Part shown: positions 5,580 through 47,129 of the stretch, piece by piece
Numbering within the stretch: the first letter of the stretch is position 1
Layout of the letters: each line of letters begins with the position of its first letter
Assembly (NCBI GenBank): GCA_038496445.1
Contig: JALMLS010000123.1
Location: 1 to 64,000, forward strand
Source: Trichosphaerium sp. ATCC 40318
Lineage: Eukaryota > Protista > Tubulinea
Length of the DNA stretch: 64,000 bases
Direction of reading: 5' to 3'
Translations under genes and position numbers: made by a program
Notes under the pieces: generated by a model
What the model was told of the DNA's origin: nothing
Seen by the model: the letters and a program-made list of their open reading frames with translations, nothing else
Database searches by the model: none

Positions 5580-8500
5580 ATGGCCACAGATCCCAAGTTC
5601 GCTCAGAAAATATACACCATATTAAGCTCGTTGCCTGGTACAGCGCGTGAGCCTTTGCCAAAAATACGTATCCAGGTTTCGTTCTCTGGTAAACTCTTCT
5701 GGGTACCTGTACCTTCAGAGGAAACAGTACAATGGGTTATGGATGAGGTACAGTAATTATTTGCGCACACTGCGGTTAACGCCACTGTAGGTGTGCAAGC
5801 GCTTTGAAAAAGTACGCGGAGTGAAGGCTAAGATAAACAGAATCACCACTGAGAAAGGCGCAGTCATGTCACCTGAAGATAACTGTGGAGACAGTATCTC
5901 TCCAGGTGTAAAGCTCTACGCGTACGGTGAAATCGACCAAGAAAGTGACGTACGTTCATTTTCGCCTAAAATCGCCCACTAAAAGGGTTTTAATTCTCAC
6001 AAACGTTTTCCACTACGACTACATTGCTTTACGCTCTTTGAGCCGAACAAAATTATTTGGTTTATGTTTACCTTAAAAACACAACTCAAGATGTTTTTTA
6101 GGCCGTCAAAGACAACGAACGATTCTCAGTTGAGCGTAAAAAGATCATTGATCCAGACACAGGAGCTGTAGTTGATACTAGATGTATGATTGTTCTCAAT
6201 GATACTGTTCTCATTGAGTCCATACGTTATTTCATCAGCTCTGATATCTTTTACGAGAAACGGTACGCGTTAGGCTGCAGTACACCTCGTTTTCTTCACT
6301 GAATTTTCCCTTTGCTAAAAATACGTTTTCTTACGCCGTTCTAGCCCGAAAGTTAACGCAGAGGCTCTGCTACAATACCTCGAGCAATTCAAAAAGAATG
6401 CAACATACAGAGCTCGATTGAAGCCTCTTATCGACTTTTTGGAGAACGAGTACGAGGACATCCGTAAGAAGATCAATACTATGTTAACAGACGGTAAAAT
6501 CAACTACGACAGTCTCTGGAGTATTTTTGCACCATCTACAACTGTACGTACCAAACGCTCAGAAAAACTGCTCTAATAGTTGGTTAGATTACCTCAAAAG
6601 TCGGAGTATCACAGCACGCAGTTGGTGCAAAGATCAAAACGTCCAAATACAATAGATCATCCTGGTTCCCTTCCTTCGACATCACTGCCGATGTTATTAA
6701 ATCTAATGGTGGAACGTACTACAGAGCATCAGAGAGTTACTCAATCCCTGCCTTCTCAGGTGTTAAAACACTAAAGGTACTTCCTTCAAAATCAGAAAAA
6801 AAATTATCAACTGATGATTGTAGGATCTGCCTGTAAGACCTTTGGATGAGGCAACAAAAAAAATTCTTATTGCTCGTGGTAAGAAGTTCATGCAAGCCGC
6901 TAAAGGCGCACATTACATGAACTACACAGGCAATATTGAATGGAAACAGTACGCAAGAAAAAAAGGAATATCACATGCTCATAATAACCTTTAGTTGGTG
7001 GACAACAAACTCAACAAAAGCTTACGGAAGGTAAAAACTGAAAAAATTTTCTGATTATTGTTCTCAGTTTATTCTGTGTTTCTTACTTTATCAAAGGGTT
7101 ATGGTAGATGGTGTTAGTTTTTCGCGTATGAATCCAAATTATAGATCATTTTCTACATCTCCTGCTTCGAGTACTAGAATGGCAGTACGTACTCCTTCAC
7201 AAACTTTTATTTTTTTTTGATTTTTTTTGCTTTTTCGTTCATTCATTTGTTTCGCTAAATGTTTCTCTTCTAGTCCATTCCTGAGGAGCATTTGTTCATG
7301 ACCTGGCCTACCATTGGTGGTTTTAGTTTTTCAGCCAAGAAATGGGGTGAAATTGTTGTTGAGAACTTGCTTCCTGTTAAATACGACGACAAAGCCTTCG
7401 AAAAGCTTGTCTTCCCACCAAAAAAGAAACAATTGATCAAGAGTCTAGTAGAGAACGCACACGAGGTACCCATGAACCATTTCGCACATAATCTTCATGT
7501 CTCTCGGGAGAGTGCATACGCTTATGCAACCTCTTTTTTTTTTGGGTTTTTGTTGCTTTTGTGGTCACAACTTGATTTTTCGGTTATTTGCACTTTTTTG
7601 ACCAAACCACTTTCAAAAATGTTTCCTTTACGATTGGATACGGCCATACAACCATGAAAACTCCGTGTCTCTTTCCGAACCGCGAAGATAAGCATGGTAT
7701 GGCCCTGCCAGTACTTGGGTCCGTGAGGACCAGGGAACGTAGGGTGCTGTATTCATTTTGCTTTTTTCGTCATGAAGCAAGCAGTACGAGTGCATAACAG
7801 CAACTCAAACGCTTTATTTTGTTAGATTGCACATGCGTCCAGAATACAAAGAGTTTCCTTTTTTTTGTTCAAAAAATATCGCCAACTTGCATTACAAATC
7901 ACTAAATCTGTGTTTAGTCGTTTGCCGATATCATCTCTGGAAAAGGTGGTGGTTGTATTTTCTTGCTCCATGGTTCTCCTGGTGTAGGTAAAACCCTCAC
8001 TGCAGAGGCAATTGCAGAGTTATTGCATAGGCCATTGTATTCTGTTAGTGTTGGTGAACTTGGTACAAACACCAAGGAACTCGAAGAGAAATTACGTCAG
8101 ATTCTTGAATTGGCTAGTATCTGGAACGCTGTCGTCCTTATAGATGAGGCAGATATCTTCCTTGAGAAGCGTTCTGAGAATGCTATCATGCGTAATGCTA
8201 TGGTAAGTAAAGTTTCGAAGAAAGGAAAAAAGATCCACAGCCAACAATCTTGTTTTTTCTTCTTGTTTTTTTTTCTCGTTTTTTTCGTATGTCTTACTTG
8301 TTATAGGTTGGTATCTTCTTGCGTTTGCTTGAATATCATCAAGGTGTACTTTTCTTGACAACCAATCGTGTCAAAGTATTCGATGAAGCCTTCCACTCAC
8401 GTATTTCAGGTACGCTCTCTTTTTTGTTCTTTAAAAGCTATTTTTCTTTGCTTCTTTCTCTTTTGTTTTTTCGGTCCCTGATTTACTCTTCAGTCGCCCT

Positions 8501-40272: not shown

Positions 40273-42260
40273 ATGCTGCGTCTGAGTCGTAAATTACACC
40301 AGGTTCTTGGTGACCCTCATAAAAGGGTGTGGAGGGTGCCAAATACTCTATGGGGCCAAGTAGAAGGTGCAGAAGGTATAACTCCCTTCAAAAGCGAAGA
40401 TGATGCCGTATCCGGTAATTTATTGCTTGACAAGAATACATATTCGCGTATGCAGGTTTGTCATAAACTCACAGCCTCACAATCGGTAAAATGGTGTAAT
40501 AGGTGATAAATTACGACTCTGAACCTGTAGATGGCACCTACGTATCAAAGTGCATTTCTTCTGCACTTGAGAAACGACGTACAATGGGAAAACACTTTGA
40601 TGTCAACAACGTTGCATCAGGGTTCAGGCTTATTAATCATACGTTCGATGGTCTACCAGGCGTTGAGGCACTACTACATCTGTCACCATTATAAAATAAC
40701 AAAGTGTCAGGTTGACGTTTATGCTGGTCACGCAGTAATGCGCTTGTACAGTCACTATTGGCGTAAATTCGCACGTCCAATGGCAAGAACAATTTTGGGA
40801 TTGAAAACAAGGCCAATCTCTGGTGTACGATTCAAATCTTTAGGCCGTTTGTTGTAACCTCTCTCGCAGGTATACCTCATTGATAACTCAAGAAGTGAAG
40901 ATGACCGAACACCACCATCCAACAGTGTGTCGTTGCTTTTGGGTAAGAGGGCACCACGCGATATGACAAACGTAGAGGAGAACGGTTTGTTGTTCCAAGT
41001 TGAGCTTGACAGACAATCAAATGGCGTATTTCTTGATCAAAGGCGAAACCGCCAGCGAGTTGTTGAGCTTATGGAAAAAGCTCCAATAGTAAATAACCCT
41101 GGGGTAGAGAAAACAAGAATTTGTTGGAAGTGGCCTAATAAGCGATTATTAAATGTGTTTTCATTTTCTGGGACTTTTAGCGTATTTGTAGCGCAGAAGA
41201 ATCATCTCAGTGTTAACGTTGATGTATCTAAATCAGCACATGCTATTGCAAAGAAGAATTTTTACCTCAACAGACTTGACACTCAAGGTCATTGGTTCAA
41301 TCCAAAGGTAATTTTGCTATTTTTTTTTTTACATTTTGACACTTGTTAACCTTACAAAAGGACGCTATGGATAAATTACCAAATCTTTGGAAAGAAAGGC
41401 ATCAATTTCAAGTTGTTCTTTTAGATCCACCTACAGTCGGATTCTCAAGGACAAGTGAAGGAGTGTCAAGGTTTTCTACAAAAACACATTATAGACGATT
41501 GGTTGAGGTTGCAGCACCATTAGTAGCACCAGGGGGTACGACCCAGAGCCAAGAATATCATATTGATGGTATGTAGGCTATCTTGTTTGTTTTACAAATA
41601 CAAGAACATTGAGCAAACTAAATTGGATGGGGAATATAGGTGAGTCCTTTGCTTTCGGCCTTCGTACTAAAACACAATTCTAGAGGACGGAATAAAGGAT
41701 GCAAAGATAGCTATTAAGCCACAGTTAGAACAAGAAGCCTTTGAGGCAGAGAGACGAAGGCTTCGCTTGCGGCGTACGATTGAAACAAGTATGCATTGAA
41801 ATAATACTTTTTAGTGAAACTCTCACCAAAAGAACGTGAACGTGCACTGCGTTCAACAAAGTGGGATATATCTGATAAAGAAATGGAACAGAGATATAAC
41901 TTTAAGAAAGTTGATGAATGGACGCAGGATGAAGATTTTGGATGGCTTCCTGGTATGAAGAGAATTACATGTTTAGTTTGATATTTTCATTGATTAACGT
42001 ATGCAACAGGTGATGAAGATTACTCGAAGTACCTTATAGGTGTTGTATATAAACGAGAGTATGTACATAAAATGCCAAAACGGAAGACAGATATGAGAGA
42101 GTTTAAGAAAAGAGAAGATAAACTGGAAGCAAAAAATAAACGTAAAAAACTAAAGAAGCCAAAGAGAACATTTATGGTTTCTAAAGAAGACTTGATGGCT
42201 GTTGACCTGTCACGTGTAAAAGATGTAGAGTTGGACGAAGGTGAAGCCTCAAAAGAATAA
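40273..42260 (+). CDS. RlmI/RlmK-family SAM-dependent rRNA methyltransferase, probably mitochondrial
   Basis: MLRLSRKL presequence-like start, FRLINHTFDGLPG.VDVYA, ENGLLFQV..GVFLDQRRNR, LLNVFSFSGTFSV, VVLLDPPT. Confidence 0.85.
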
Positions 42261-42433
42261 AAAAAATTGTATTTGTGTCATTGGTTGCAAGTCTAGAAGT
42301 GATCCTCACGTGACGTAAGTTGATTTTGTGAACAGAAATAATAATGTGATGACGTTCGTCGACACGCTTTTTCGGTTAATAATAAGCTGATAGTCAAAGG
42401 GAGTACTTATAGGCGAAAAGGGAGACGGACTTG

Positions 42434-44062
42434 ATGGCAACGGATGATATGGACATAGATGAACCGTTTGCGGAACCATTAACCTATAGATTACCAGGAG
42501 AACTACTATTACATGTGTTTTTGCTATTAGATACCTCTGCCGTACGTAGCGTGCGTGCTGTAAGCCAACGGTGGCTTAGTATTTCTGGTGAGGCAACAAT
42601 TAGTTTCTATGTCTTATTTACGGGCGATTTACAGATTCTGACGCTATATGGAAGCAATTATGCTTTAACCACAAAAATTACGGATTTCCTGTGATTGGTA
42701 ATGGAAGGCAGCTATCTAAGTTACAAAAACCGCCTTCTGATAGCTACAGAGAGTTTTTTTGTGAACTTTGTCTGTACGAGCTAAAAAAACGTAAGTGGCA
42801 TGTCAAGTAAGAGCTACCGCAGTAAAAAACCGTTAGGTACCATTTGCAGAGCATTATATGATTACACAGCACAGGAAGATAACGAACTGTCATTCAAAGT
42901 ACGTCTTTTTATTGAAACATTGTATAATGTTGCGCTAGGCAAGCGATTTAATTATTGTAATCACTGAGTCAAGCGATTCTGAAAGCGGTTGGTGGACTGG
43001 GTATGCAAAGGGTCATGTAGGGTTGTTTCCAGCGGAATACGTTGAAACGTTAGAAGACACAAACACTCAAATACTTACACCAATAACGCTGAATGGCACG
43101 ATAAAATCATTCTATAATCACTAATATTGCGTGTAGGTCCAAAGATAAAGTTTAAAGCAGTAAACCTTGAAAGCACAATTCATTTGCTCAATGATGTTAT
43201 GAAACCATACGACTGTCGTAAACATATAGCTAGATGTGAGCAACAAGGTTTCCAAACGGCATTGCATCATAATTCAGTACGTCAAAGTCCTTTTGCGGAA
43301 AACTCTTTGTCAAACCTTGTTCGTTTTCAGCATTTTCTTTTTTCTCAATATCAGAATTTGATGATGTCATATACTTAACTTGGTAAAGGTTTGTCCGTAT
43401 GCTTCCAAGTGCCTAAATAATACTCTTTGGCCTGGTATAAGCGATAAGATGCCGTATGTTACGTACCAAAATAGGATATGGACGCCAATAGGTATGCAGA
43501 TTTTCTCACTTTTCCAAAAATATTTTAATTTTCTGACTTTGTTGATGTTGTACCAACAGGCATAAACCCAGAAAGTAAGGTTTTCAAATATAAGGCAGGC
43601 GATTACTCCGCCATGCATATTGACGGTCCTTACACACGAGATTCTGAAACACGAAGCTTCCTGTCAATTATCATTTACATGAACTCCGATTTCATCGGTA
43701 TGCCTTTCCCTCTCCTCCTTTTAGACTAACAAGATGCCATAGGTGGTAATACGACGTTCTTTTCTAGCCCTGTCAAGGTTTATCGTGTTGTGCGCCCAAG
43801 AGGAGGTAAAAACAGATATTTTATCTTATTGACGATGTTTTCTGATAATCTTCCATAGGTCTAGCTATTGTTTTTCCACACGTTATTTTACACGCATCCG
43901 AGAGTGTTTCTTCGGGTTTGAAGTATTTATATCGCTCAGATATTGTTTATAAATGTACTGATATGTACGTTGAAAGTTTTTAGTTGTGACACTGATCAAG
44001 TTGATTTAAGGCTTGCTACTGGCGACTATTCGCATTTAGATAGGAAAGTAATACAGCTGTAA
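42434..44062 (+). CDS. F-box + SH3 + 2OG-Fe(II) prolyl-4-hydroxylase-like fusion protein
   Basis: F-box: RLPGELLLHVFLLLD...VRAVSQRW...DAIWKQL. SH3: ALYDYTAQEDNELSFK..GWWTG...GLFPAEYVE. Oxygenase: KYKAGDYSAMHIDG..LSIIIYMNSDFIGGNTTF..P.GG.AIVFPHVILHAS..V.SGLKYLYRSD. All are joined in frame by GT-AG introns. Confidence 0.85.
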
Positions 44063-44257
44063 ATAAATAAAATAAAACAAAAACCGCGTAATACGAACAA
44101 CAACACTGAGTAGAGGAGTTATACCTCAATACACAAAAAATAGTGTTTTCGCATTTTCTGTTTATTGTCAATAGACTTCAATGCTAAAAACAACATCAGC
44201 TTGAGGTCGGCACCACACGCATGAATATATAGTAACTAGCATCTGTATACACAAAAG

Positions 44258-47129
44258 ATGGACCTAGAGTTCAAATTATCTGCGCTTACAAGCGATGATA
44301 GCGACCAGGGCAATAGCTTTGAAGACAGCGAAACCATGAGCGATGGAGGCCCTAAAATGCAAATGGTGGCTTTCTGGAAGGATCTATACGGTATGAGCCC
44401 AAAGAATGCGGAATTTAATTAAAGCGCATGTTTAGATTCTTCACAACAACACTCCACAGTCGCGAAGAACATGCATGGTACGTAGCATTTATTGTTTTAG
44501 TCCTTTTTTGTGAAAGGGTTTCTTCATCATCGTAATTATCCGATTAGAGGAGTTAGAAAACGAGAGGAGAGTAAACAACGAGCTCTCCACAGCAAACCAG
44601 GAATTAGTAGCAACAATCGGAAAGATAGAAAAAGGCAATGAGCGTCTGCGCAATGAAAACAAGCAACTCAGAAAGGCGTTGGAATATTTTAAGGTATAGT
44701 TTAACGTTTTCGAATATTGCGGCCTAATAGTCCAACTAGACGCGATTCACCGAGTCTGAATCGTCGACGGATAGAACAGAAGTTTCGTCGCCTAGGCGTA
44801 TTGCACATAAAAGTTTACGCCCTAGAACAGCGCGTGCGCCACCAGCGTCCTCAGACTATACACAAGACAAAAAGAAGAAGAAGAAAAAGAAACGGTATTT
44901 ACAACATTTATAATTCCTCGTTTTTGATTGTTGCAATACTCAATTCCTTTTACCTTAGGCGCCATTCCGATGAAGGTTCTGGACCTCAAGTTCCTCTACA
45001 AGTGCGACGGTCTTCTTCTTCAAGCCAGAATCGACCACCACCCAAATTACGCCGCAACATGCCAGGTAGTAAATCTAGCGATCATTTAGCAGTAAGTGCG
45101 ACAACGGGGCGTTCGCGAAGATTCCAGTTGCTAAAGGGAAAGGTATGCTAAAACAGTTTTTTTGTGACAAAAAACTAAATACATTTCAGCCTTCTCAATC
45201 AACTTCTGGAATCGTTTTGGGACCTTTGCTCAGTAGAGCAAGAAGCGAGGGAAGAGTTAGAAATAACAAGAGGGCGATAAAGACACCTAGAAAGGCTGAT
45301 CGCTTCTTTAGAGATGAAGTAAGTGCTACAAAAACAGTCTAAAATTTTTGGCTTACACTGTTTTAGATACCTGTGGTAATTAGAGATGATAGTGACGAAG
45401 ATGAGCTACAAGCAGATACACTGAAATCTCTAGTGCGTAGGTGCACGGATATAAGCCCTAAGTTTGACTTGCAACGCGCGTTCTTGTGTACATACAAGCG
45501 CTATATTACTGCTGAAAATTTACTTGAGCTGTTAAAGCAAAGGTACAGCTCAAAAGTGTTGATGCCGAGACTAAGTGTACTTATTTAGATTTGACGTGTC
45601 AAAGTATTTATTCAAAATCACAGCCAAAAAAAGGAATCTTGCGCGACAAAATAGCGCTGTTCAACGTACAGCCAAAATAATACGATTGCGCGTTCTTGCC
45701 TTTCTACGTAAATGGATTACAGATTTCTGGTTCGACTTTGAAGAAGCTCCTCAAGTCATTGTATTGTTGGAAGAATGGATCAATGATAAGATTAGAGCAG
45801 CACCGGTATTGTGTTTTTTTTGAAGTTTTCGAGAAGTTAAATAACTAACCTTAATTAGTCCATGGGTGATAAAGCTGACCATTTGTTAAAAAACGTTGCT
45901 GATATGGTTCGTGTTTGAATTTGAATACTAAAACATGCTTGGTTTCTGAGGTTGTGTTGTTGATATTCTTGTTTAGGTAGATATGATAAAACGAAAGTCT
46001 GCTGAACGCACTTTCGCGTCAATCAGTCCTGGAGGTCGTTCACCAAAAAACGAAATTGATTGGTTTGAATTACAGCCAAAAGAGGTTCACCAGGATTAAT
46101 TAATACCATGTTCTCACACTCTGTATAGCTCGCACGTCAGCTCACATTGGTAGAGCACAAAATGTATAGTATGATAAAGCCGTCTGAGTTTGTTCACGAA
46201 GCGTGGAATCAACCCAATGCACAAGAATTGGCTCCTAATCTTATGAAGTTCATCGGGTGGTTTAATAGGGTATCCGGTTGGGTGGCAACTTGTATTGTCC
46301 AGGAAAAGGAACAAAAACGCCGTGTAGATATGATCAAGTTTTTTGTCACTGTTGCTAGTGTACGTTAAGCTTCAAAGCGATCATTTGTTGTTTTATCTAA
46401 TATTTGATAGCATTGTCTCGAGATCAACAACGGTAATTGTGCTTTGGAAATTGTCGCTGGAATTAGTCAAGGTACGCACTCTTACTAAATATTACTCAGA
46501 AGTTACTTGTATTTACGTGGTACCTAGGCCCTGTCCAAAGGCTAGAAAAGTCTATAACAGATGCTCTTGGCCGTAACGCACTTAAAGTCCCTACTGGGAC
46601 GCCAAAGAAAAGCTTTAAATCCGGTATAACTGGAAAATGGCAAAAAATGTCAGTCTTGGCTCATTATGCACAAAACTTTCACGCTATTCGTGACTATATG
46701 GACAATGTAATTCCACCTGCAGTGCCTTATATAGGCATATATCTGAAGGATCTTACAGCTCTTAACGCAGTACGTTCGGTTATCGTTTTTGCTAAACACT
46801 GAGCTTATCATTTTGTAGAATACAACGGATTATGTTGAAGACGAAACAAACTCTGGAGAAACACAGCGCAGAGGCAAGCCAGCTATTGGCAACTCTCGTA
46901 GACTCGTTAATTTTCAAAAGTGTAACGAAATAGCCAAGGTTTGTGAATGTTTTGAGCTACCTGCGTTATTAATGATTAAACTTAGATTGTGGAAGACGCC
47001 ACCAAGTTCCAGGCGGTAAGATTCCCATTTGAAGAGCAGGATTGGATCGTACAACAGTTACTCGCTATCGGGGGAATGGATAGCGACCAAATGTACGAGG
47101 TTATAAAGGGCTACAACGAGAGGAAGTAA
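44258..47129 (+). CDS. RasGEF (REM + CDC25 domains) with N-terminal coiled coil
   Basis: AFLCTYKRYITAENLL, IRLRVLAFLRKWI, ARQLTLVE, APNLMKFIGWFNRVSGWV, PAVPYIGIYLKDLT, LVNFQK. Confidence 0.92.

Follow-up and report, generated by a model that had tools for sequence, protein, structure and literature searches.

An expressed Trichosphaerium gene encoding predicted F-box, SH3 and prolyl 4-hydroxylase-like oxygenase domains in a single chain

The stretch of DNA analyzed in this study, hereafter called the window, is 64,000 nucleotides (nt) long and corresponds to positions 1 to 64,000 of the forward strand of contig JALMLS010000123.1 in the genome assembly GCA_038496445.1 of Trichosphaerium sp. 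ATCC 40318. It is eukaryotic DNA of about 38% G+C, with introns of 40-112 nt. At 42434-44062 of the window we found a single expressed gene of ten exons on the + strand, as defined by spliced cDNA contigs, which runs from an ATG at 42434 to a TAA at 44060-62 and whose product is predicted to combine an F-box, an SH3 domain and an Fe(II)/2-oxoglutarate (2OG) oxygenase domain. The joined exons amount to 1131 nt, that is, 376 codons and a stop codon, and contain no internal stop. In a three-frame translation of the unspliced region 42400-44100, the F-box-like, SH3-like and oxygenase-like stretches lie in shifting frames. All features of the gene described below are on the + strand.

Seven public sequencing runs contain 11-41% of the sampled words of 42300-44200, a proportion that fits exon-only content. 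Contigs of four public runs from three studies (X1, X2, X4 and X7) were aligned to 41500-45000 of the window; spliced contigs covering the ten-exon mRNA are present in these four runs, and together they skip nine introns. The runs were compared as assembled contigs, from which splice joints can be read, whereas isoform proportions and the expression level cannot. One contig (X4 record 8, 1211 nt) begins at 42411, reaches the gene's 3' end and includes all ten exons. At its 5' end it has a loose 20-nt tail, which we recognize as a template-switch oligo; the contigs are therefore cDNA, and the mRNA starts at approximately 42394-42411. The 5' untranslated region was thus placed at 42394..42433, as the cDNA contigs begin at 42394 (X7) and 42411 (X4), and an in-frame stop codon is located upstream of the ATG at 42410-12. 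The only strain differences seen in the whole coding sequence are three synonymous third-position changes in exon 6, at 43421, 43424 and 43448, which distinguish the window from X1, X4 and X7, and none of which is found in X2. The labels of the runs denote three different organisms, but the identity of their contigs to the window is 99% or higher.

The N-terminal half of the gene was examined by Pfam scans made exon by exon, as were the remaining exons. Exon 1 (42434..42587; residues 1-51) contains the start codon, an acidic N-terminus and most of the F-box, including an LPGE motif from residue 20. It matched both Pfam F-box-like (E-value 2.2e-6, 27.8 bits against a cut-off of 24.3) and Pfam F-box (E-value 6.4e-5, 23.2 bits against a cut-off of 20.5), with membership of the F-box class defined by PF00646/PF12937. 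A PDB sequence search with exon 1 gave nothing useful. Exon 1 covers positions 3-34 of the F-box profile, and the remainder, with the conserved Trp (residue 57, assigned by reading of the sequence), opens exon 2 (42635..42790), which continues into a linker without a Pfam match. Intron 1 (42588-42634, from cDNA) separates the two exons, and the joint, reported as 42586/42634, is present in X1, X4 and X7. Exon 2 is followed by intron 2 (42791-42836), which is spliced out with the joint 42790/42837 in all four runs. The SH3 domain is divided between exon 3 (42837..42898), which has the first part with the ALYDY motif at residue 109 and matched Pfam SH3_1 (E-value 2.4e-6, 27.5 bits against a cut-off of 22.9; SH3 membership being PF00018 and related families), and exon 4 (42939..43095), which has the second part and a linker; intron 3 (42899-42938, from cDNA) lies between them. 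Exon 4 matched Pfam SH3_9 (E-value 8.2e-8, 32.4 bits against a cut-off of 30) as well as 90 SH3 chains in the PDB at E-values of 0.01 or lower, down to 1e-7, the best being yeast 1oot and 2a08, followed by cortactin and myosin 1E. The ALYDY, WW, G-x-F-P and Y-V motifs of SH3 domains are all present, the last three in exon 4. Judged by sequence, the F-box (residues ~19-62) and the SH3 domain (residues ~106-161) are canonical, and the order of domains, with the F-box N-terminal and the other modules C-terminal to it, is typical of F-box proteins.

The connection between the SH3 exon and the oxygenase exons deserves separate consideration, as the apparent fusion might be an artefact of two genes or of a chimeric assembly. 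Before the reads were compared, this explanation had in its favor that no GT-AG intron could connect the SH3 and oxygenase frames, and that a stop codon follows the SH3 exon at about 43121. However, all four runs show the same in-frame joint, reported at 43094/43136 with two ambiguous letters; a shift of +1 gives a 41-nt GC..AG intron (intron 4, 43096-43136, phase 1), which connects the SH3 exon in frame with exon 5, the first of the oxygenase part. The shorter flank of this joint is 141 letters, and the joint is identical in the four runs. Together with the single contig across all ten exons, this refutes the artefact. Intron 4 has the sole non-GT donor among the nine introns of the gene, the other eight being GT..AG. 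A candidate join of the SH3 and oxygenase parts through a weak GT..AG pair at 43041..43144 was ruled out by the cDNA, which supports the GC-AG intron.

The oxygenase part is encoded by the following exons. Exon 5 (43137..43276) specifies an N-terminal strand and a helix ending in GFQTAL, and was recognized by the family profile described below and by a tblastn match of a relative (P0007). It is followed by intron 5 (43277..43388), the longest at 112 nt, which is spliced out in all four runs. Exon 6 (43389..43491), probably the helix preceding the double-stranded beta-helix core, is delimited by cDNA joints and has a weak collinear placement at profile positions 103-116. Beyond intron 6 (43492-43559) lies exon 7 (43560..43697), which encodes core strands with the H-x-D motif (His277 at 43616-18 and Asp279 at 43622-24) and was matched by the family profile, by phmmer (relative P0002) and by tblastn with E-values down to ~2e-13. 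Exon 8 (43743..43805), again defined by cDNA joints and a weak collinear placement (positions 172-181), would form the strands following a GG-x-T-x-F motif; it is flanked by intron 7 (43698-43742) and intron 8 (43806-43858). Exon 9 (43859..43964) contains the distal His336 (43891-93), Lys346 (43921-23), Arg350 and Asp352, placed by the family profile and by invariant columns. After intron 9 (43965-44010), exon 10 (44011..44062) adds a 17-residue C-terminal tail and the TAA; the joint 43964/44011 is present in X1, X2 and X4. Introns 6 to 9 were all determined from cDNA.

The identity of the oxygenase domain emerged from comparison with a family of relatives. Exon 7 alone matched PF13640 weakly (E-value 0.09, 14.1 bits against a cut-off of 27), no exon matched JmjC in the Pfam scan, and PDB sequence searches with exons 7 and 9, one exon each, gave nothing useful. 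When exon 7 was searched with phmmer against 1.84 billion representatives, three proteins were obtained (P0001-P0003), among which P0001 and P0003 were judged from their sequences to be false positives (repeat proteins). The only true relative of the three, P0002, is a stand-alone PF13640 protein of 179 residues. Word-index searches starting from P0002 and a five-member alignment then yielded 874 relatives, single-domain proteins of 175-350 residues from bacteria, metagenomes and diatoms; an F-box or SH3 domain was carried by none of the best 120 of the 874. A local hidden Markov model (HMM) of the family was made from 120 relatives and run on all six-frame fragments of the window. It matched significantly only exon 7 (HMM positions 122-171, E-value 3.4e-12), exon 9 (187-222, 2.2e-9) and exon 5 (40-76, 4.2e-4; 18.7 bits exon-wise), in collinear order, and these three exon-wise matches total approximately 88 bits. 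Tblastn with single relatives agrees with this placement on the exons. Elsewhere in the window, 6102-6299 on the + strand showed a non-significant resemblance to the C-terminal oxygenase strands (E-value 0.46 with the HMM; 0.07-4 in tblastn with several relatives).

A profile of 99 family members, compared with the PDB, matched prolyl 4-hydroxylases (P4H) of known structure: Bacillus anthracis P4H (E-value 8e-21), PBCV-1 vCPH (7e-15), CrP4H from Chlamydomonas (3e-12) and P4H-TM (4e-9), with weaker matches to C-P4H alpha-2, PPHD and poxvirus C10. The AlphaFold model of P0002 (predicted local distance difference test score, pLDDT, 95.3) has as its nearest PDB folds vCPH, CrP4H, PPHD, B. anthracis P4H, Dictyostelium PhyA and PHD2, with template modelling (TM) scores of 0.6-0.73; this evidence for the double-stranded beta-helix fold concerns the relative P0002, not the Trichosphaerium protein itself. 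Among 20 columns invariant in the 99 relatives, 14 are identical in the Trichosphaerium protein, including His277, Asp279, His336, Lys346, Arg350 and Asp352, and two invariant glycines, which fall on split codons, can be recognized by eye. Another three invariant positions have changed (F99S, L123M and G157S), and Arg48 of P0002, which is also an invariant column, has no counterpart. The predicted ligands of the metal and 2OG, H277, D279, H336 and K346, are therefore all on invariant columns and intact, the last being located at His+10 as in collagen-type P4H. Thus, the C-terminal part of the protein (residues ~181-359) is predicted to be an Fe(II)/2OG oxygenase domain of the PF13640, collagen-P4H-like branch.

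These results agree in several respects with a preliminary description of the locus made from the sequence alone. It had proposed three domains in one spliced frame between 42434 and 44062, and both ends coincide exactly with those of the cDNA-based coding sequence; the 376-residue open reading frame has no internal stop and is represented by spliced contigs in four runs. That all three domains belong to one transcript, which the description left to be confirmed by cDNA, is borne out by the full-gene contig and the in-frame SH3-oxygenase joint. The HID motif (43616-43624) and the distal His (43891) are also at the positions given there, and the Lys of the 2OG-binding region named there is at 43921.

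The substrate side of the oxygenase domain differs from that of its relatives. Approximately 15 residues are absent between the first helix, which ends in GFQTAL, and the next helix. The counterpart of the absent region in the P0002 model is a beta-hairpin plus loop, and the hairpin with its Arg is retained in all relatives among the best 120 of the 874. The gap is located at the junction of exons 5 and 6, so that intron 5 sits exactly where the Arg hairpin would be encoded. We considered whether intron 5 hides the missing segment. No frame of the intron matched the family HMM. The stretch EFDDVIY (in the frame of 42400), a candidate for a missing exon, was rejected, since the cDNA of every run lacks it and the HMM does not match it. 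Read through in frame, the intron resembles the lost Arg strand to the eye, but this reading was rejected too, since between 391 and 500 of 500 shuffles scored at least as well.

In a profile-to-PDB alignment, Arg48 of P0002 aligns with chain residue 64 of CrP4H, which is Arg93 (numbering offset 29, checked on His143 and Asp145). In the complex of CrP4H with a peptide, Arg93 is one of four residues around the substrate proline, and it corresponds to Arg252 in the finger loop of PHD2 (PMC2847220). A preprint reports that loss of Arg93 inactivates P4H (bioRxiv 10.1101/2023.05.22.541140, citing Koski 2007). Only one of the four residues of this proline cage is kept in the Trichosphaerium protein: Arg161 is present, the segment with Arg93 is absent, and Ser and Asp stand in place of Tyr140 and Trp243, respectively. 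At the position of Tyr140 the family has Phe, and at that of Trp243, assigned by register, it has an invariant Asp. The finger loop is a main substrate-binding element in protein prolyl hydroxylases and is short in small-molecule enzymes, and enzymes of the PHD/PhyA type are characterized by an Arg that binds 2OG on the last core strand and by a beta2-beta3 finger loop for the substrate (PMC7864055). The segment absent here is located where PHD-type enzymes carry this loop, and with a Lys at His+10 the protein has neither of the two PHD/PhyA-type features; nor does it have the four-residue proline cage of collagen-type protein P4H. From its sequence, the domain is best described as an oxygenase of the P4H superfamily whose cofactor site is intact and whose substrate site is remodelled. 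Because of this remodelling, the term prolyl hydroxylase, as used in the preliminary description, is not established, and the resemblance is to the superfamily. Similarly, the analogy drawn there with the oxygen sensors PhyA and PHD gains no specific support, the predicted 2OG binder being a Lys of the collagen-P4H type and not an Arg.

In sequence, the oxygenase domain is closest to the stand-alone PF13640 oxygenases (~175-350 residues; P0002, P0004 and others) from bacteria, a phage-like contig and diatoms, which share with it 43% identity over exon 7 and a common K-Y-x-x-R-x-D ending. They differ from the Trichosphaerium protein in being single-domain proteins or other fusions (SIR2, WD40) and in keeping the Arg hairpin. 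P0004 is the closest relative with a known gene context (L001 1-10842, on a Logan contig of DRR337535 of 24.6 kb); its surroundings contain many small genes without a Pfam match together with NUDIX, DUF2828, DnaJ and ClpP genes, and are large phage- or virus-like. Collagen-type P4H (CrP4H, 2jig/3gze; vCPH, 5c5t; B. anthracis P4H, 3itq) resemble the domain in the H-x-D...H motif, the Lys at His+10 and the topology, whereas the Arg93 segment, Tyr140 and Trp243 of CrP4H are not kept here, and these enzymes are without F-box or SH3. PhyA, the Skp1 prolyl 4-hydroxylase, and animal PHD2 are likewise cytoplasmic members of the P4H superfamily, tied to oxygen and to ubiquitin ligases, namely the Skp1-cullin-F-box (SCF) ligases or those of VHL. 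However, in these systems the enzyme and the ligase are separate proteins, and the enzymes have the Arg 2OG binder and the long finger loop, both of which are absent here.

With regard to the combination of an F-box with an oxygenase, the nearest known proteins are JcdI/Fbxo13 and JcdH of Dictyostelium, in which an F-box is joined to a JmjC dioxygenase and which bind Skp1; for JcdI a Michaelis constant (Km) for O2 of ~22% was measured (PMC9485057). Sporadic fusions of JMJD6 and F-box were noted in 2010 (PMC2938197). JcdI and JcdH resemble the Trichosphaerium protein in being amoebozoan and in having the F-box N-terminal to an Fe/2OG dioxygenase, and for JcdI both Skp1 binding and O2-dependent activity were shown. 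They differ in that they are of the JmjC/JMJD6 type, lack SH3, are ~120 kDa in size and are conserved across protists, whereas the oxygenase domain studied here is PF13640/P4H-like. The JmjC, JMJD6-like domain with flanking homology segments that marks the JcdI/Fbxo13 family is absent from it, and only the logic of an F-box followed by an oxygenase is common. The mammalian proteins KDM2A and KDM2B (FBXL11 and FBXL10), too, combine a 2OG oxygenase with an F-box in the same polypeptide. These are, however, JmjC histone demethylases acting on chromatin, with CXXC, PHD and LRR domains and with the oxygenase N-terminal to the F-box. The preliminary description knew of no described protein with this architecture. 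In the literature searched, we did not find the combination of a P4H-like domain, SH3 and F-box, and no F-box protein with an SH3, P4H or hydroxylase domain appears in the text of PMC9485057 and one of its supplement files; on the other hand, the principle of coupling an F-box with a 2OG oxygenase was already known, in all cases with JmjC-type enzymes. What is new here is the P4H-like type of the oxygenase and the presence of SH3.

The explanation of this arrangement that we tentatively prefer, with a probability of about 40%, is that the protein acts as a protein oxygenase docked on Skp1, or as an SCF receptor, with SH3 docking the clients and possibly replacing the lost substrate lid. The F-box would dock the protein on Skp1 and hence on cullin-1/Rbx1, and SH3 would capture PxxP-type segments of client proteins; by doing so it may substitute for the lost lid, comparable to the separate peptide-binding domain of collagen P4H. 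Using O2 and 2OG, the oxygenase would oxidize a residue in the captured client or in an adjacent SCF component, and this oxidation would be coupled either with the client's ubiquitination or with the enzyme's own turnover. Proline as the modified residue is not established. Any such enzyme would have O2 as a co-substrate, and a role in oxygen sensing is speculation. In favor of this explanation, JcdI provides an amoebal precedent of an F-box dioxygenase that binds Skp1 and depends on O2, and the strain differences in the coding sequence are all synonymous. Furthermore, the ESM Atlas contains clusters (with 70 and 80 members) of bacterial PF13640 proteins fused to WD40 beta-propellers; a protein-binding partner of this kind agrees with an enzyme acting on proteins. 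Several observations weigh against the reading of a Skp1-docked protein oxygenase or SCF receptor: the missing hairpin, the three altered invariant positions and the inactivation reported for loss of Arg93. In addition, no ortholog with the same architecture was found, so that selection on the fusion is unproven; this is a weak negative, as it comes from a 45-residue exon 7 query, which is blind to relatives much below ~45% identity, and from one metagenome scan, made with the fragment free of stops that surrounds exon 7, which gave no matches. A much more specific version, which we consider rather doubtful, is that of a single-chain writer, reader and ligase adaptor: SH3, having replaced the lid, would dock a proline-rich client, the oxygenase would modify it in a manner dependent on O2 and 2OG, and the F-box would pass it to SCF ubiquitination, so that the protein would be a cis-coupled equivalent of PHD-VHL.

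Alternatively, the protein may be chiefly an enzyme, like JcdI, in which the F-box keeps Skp1 bound and sets the protein's own level by SCF turnover, and the clients are modified and not degraded. In Dictyostelium, the O2-related phenotype of JcdI required its dioxygenase activity and not its F-box. Lower levels of JcdI were connected with its F-box and its association with Skp1, and its solubility in E. coli depended on Skp1 (PMC9485057). However, SH3 beside an F-box is also expected of a substrate receptor, and we regard this alternative as possible, with a probability about half that of a Skp1-docked protein oxygenase or SCF receptor. A similar standing is given to the possibility that the oxygenase domain does not hydroxylate and is instead an Fe/2OG/O2 ligand-sensing module that gates stability or client binding, or a plain pseudo-enzyme recognition domain. 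FBXL5 combines an F-box with a hemerythrin domain that binds iron and O2. It is relevant to the sensor possibility only, as its domain has the hemerythrin fold and is not an enzyme. Loss of the Arg hairpin, retention of one of four cage residues and change of three more invariant positions are as expected for a domain that has ceased to hydroxylate, as is the inactivation of P4H upon loss of Arg93 mentioned in the preprint; on the other hand, all ligands of the metal and 2OG and most of the core invariants are kept, which is unexpected for a decayed enzyme.

The substrate might also be other than a protein, with a small-molecule oxygenase merely positioned in the cell by SH3 and the F-box. Small-molecule 2OG oxygenases tend to have short finger loops (PMC7864055), and it is this region that is lost here. 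However, the relatives by sequence and by fold are protein hydroxylases and both partner domains are protein-protein interaction modules, which makes this improbable. Even less probable is hydroxylation of Skp1 in cis, as a tethered alternative to PhyA. Skp1 hydroxylation of the PhyA type does exist in amoebae, and an enzyme carrying an F-box would be placed next to Skp1; nevertheless, the 2OG binder is a Lys and not the PhyA-type Arg, and there is no counterpart of the finger loop through which PhyA is inferred to bind Skp1. Furthermore, the F-box covers the C-terminal region of Skp1 that holds the target proline, which also counts against this possibility.

The known links between O2 and protein degradation consist either of an enzyme and a ligase that are separate (PHD/VHL and PhyA/Skp1) or of JmjC F-box proteins (JcdI and KDM2). 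A small, expressed chain with a predicted P4H-superfamily oxygenase, SH3 and F-box is a compact test case, which could show whether hydroxylation and ubiquitination are coupled in cis, and how the substrate lid of a protein oxygenase can be exchanged for a docking module. If the enzyme is inactive, it would instead exemplify a P4H fold that has taken on a new role in recognition or sensing.

The gene is a separate, compact transcription unit, since the cDNA contigs of the upstream neighbor end at ~42353 and those of the downstream neighbor start at ~44167-44192, about 105-130 nt past the stop codon at 44062. The spacing of genes is very tight, with the upstream contig reaching 42353 and the present mRNA beginning at 42394-42411. 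The word depth of contigs over 42436-43956 is approximately 6-50 times that of both neighbors (58.8 versus 4-9 in X4, and 567.8 versus 5-16 in X7), although contig depth is a poor measure of abundance and the runs had been chosen by this gene. The upstream gene (41343-42260), also on the + strand, encodes a protein with a lysine-rich C-terminal tail and has four introns of 41-57 nt confirmed by cDNA, at 41535-41575, 41637-41680, 41774-41814 and 41952-42008.

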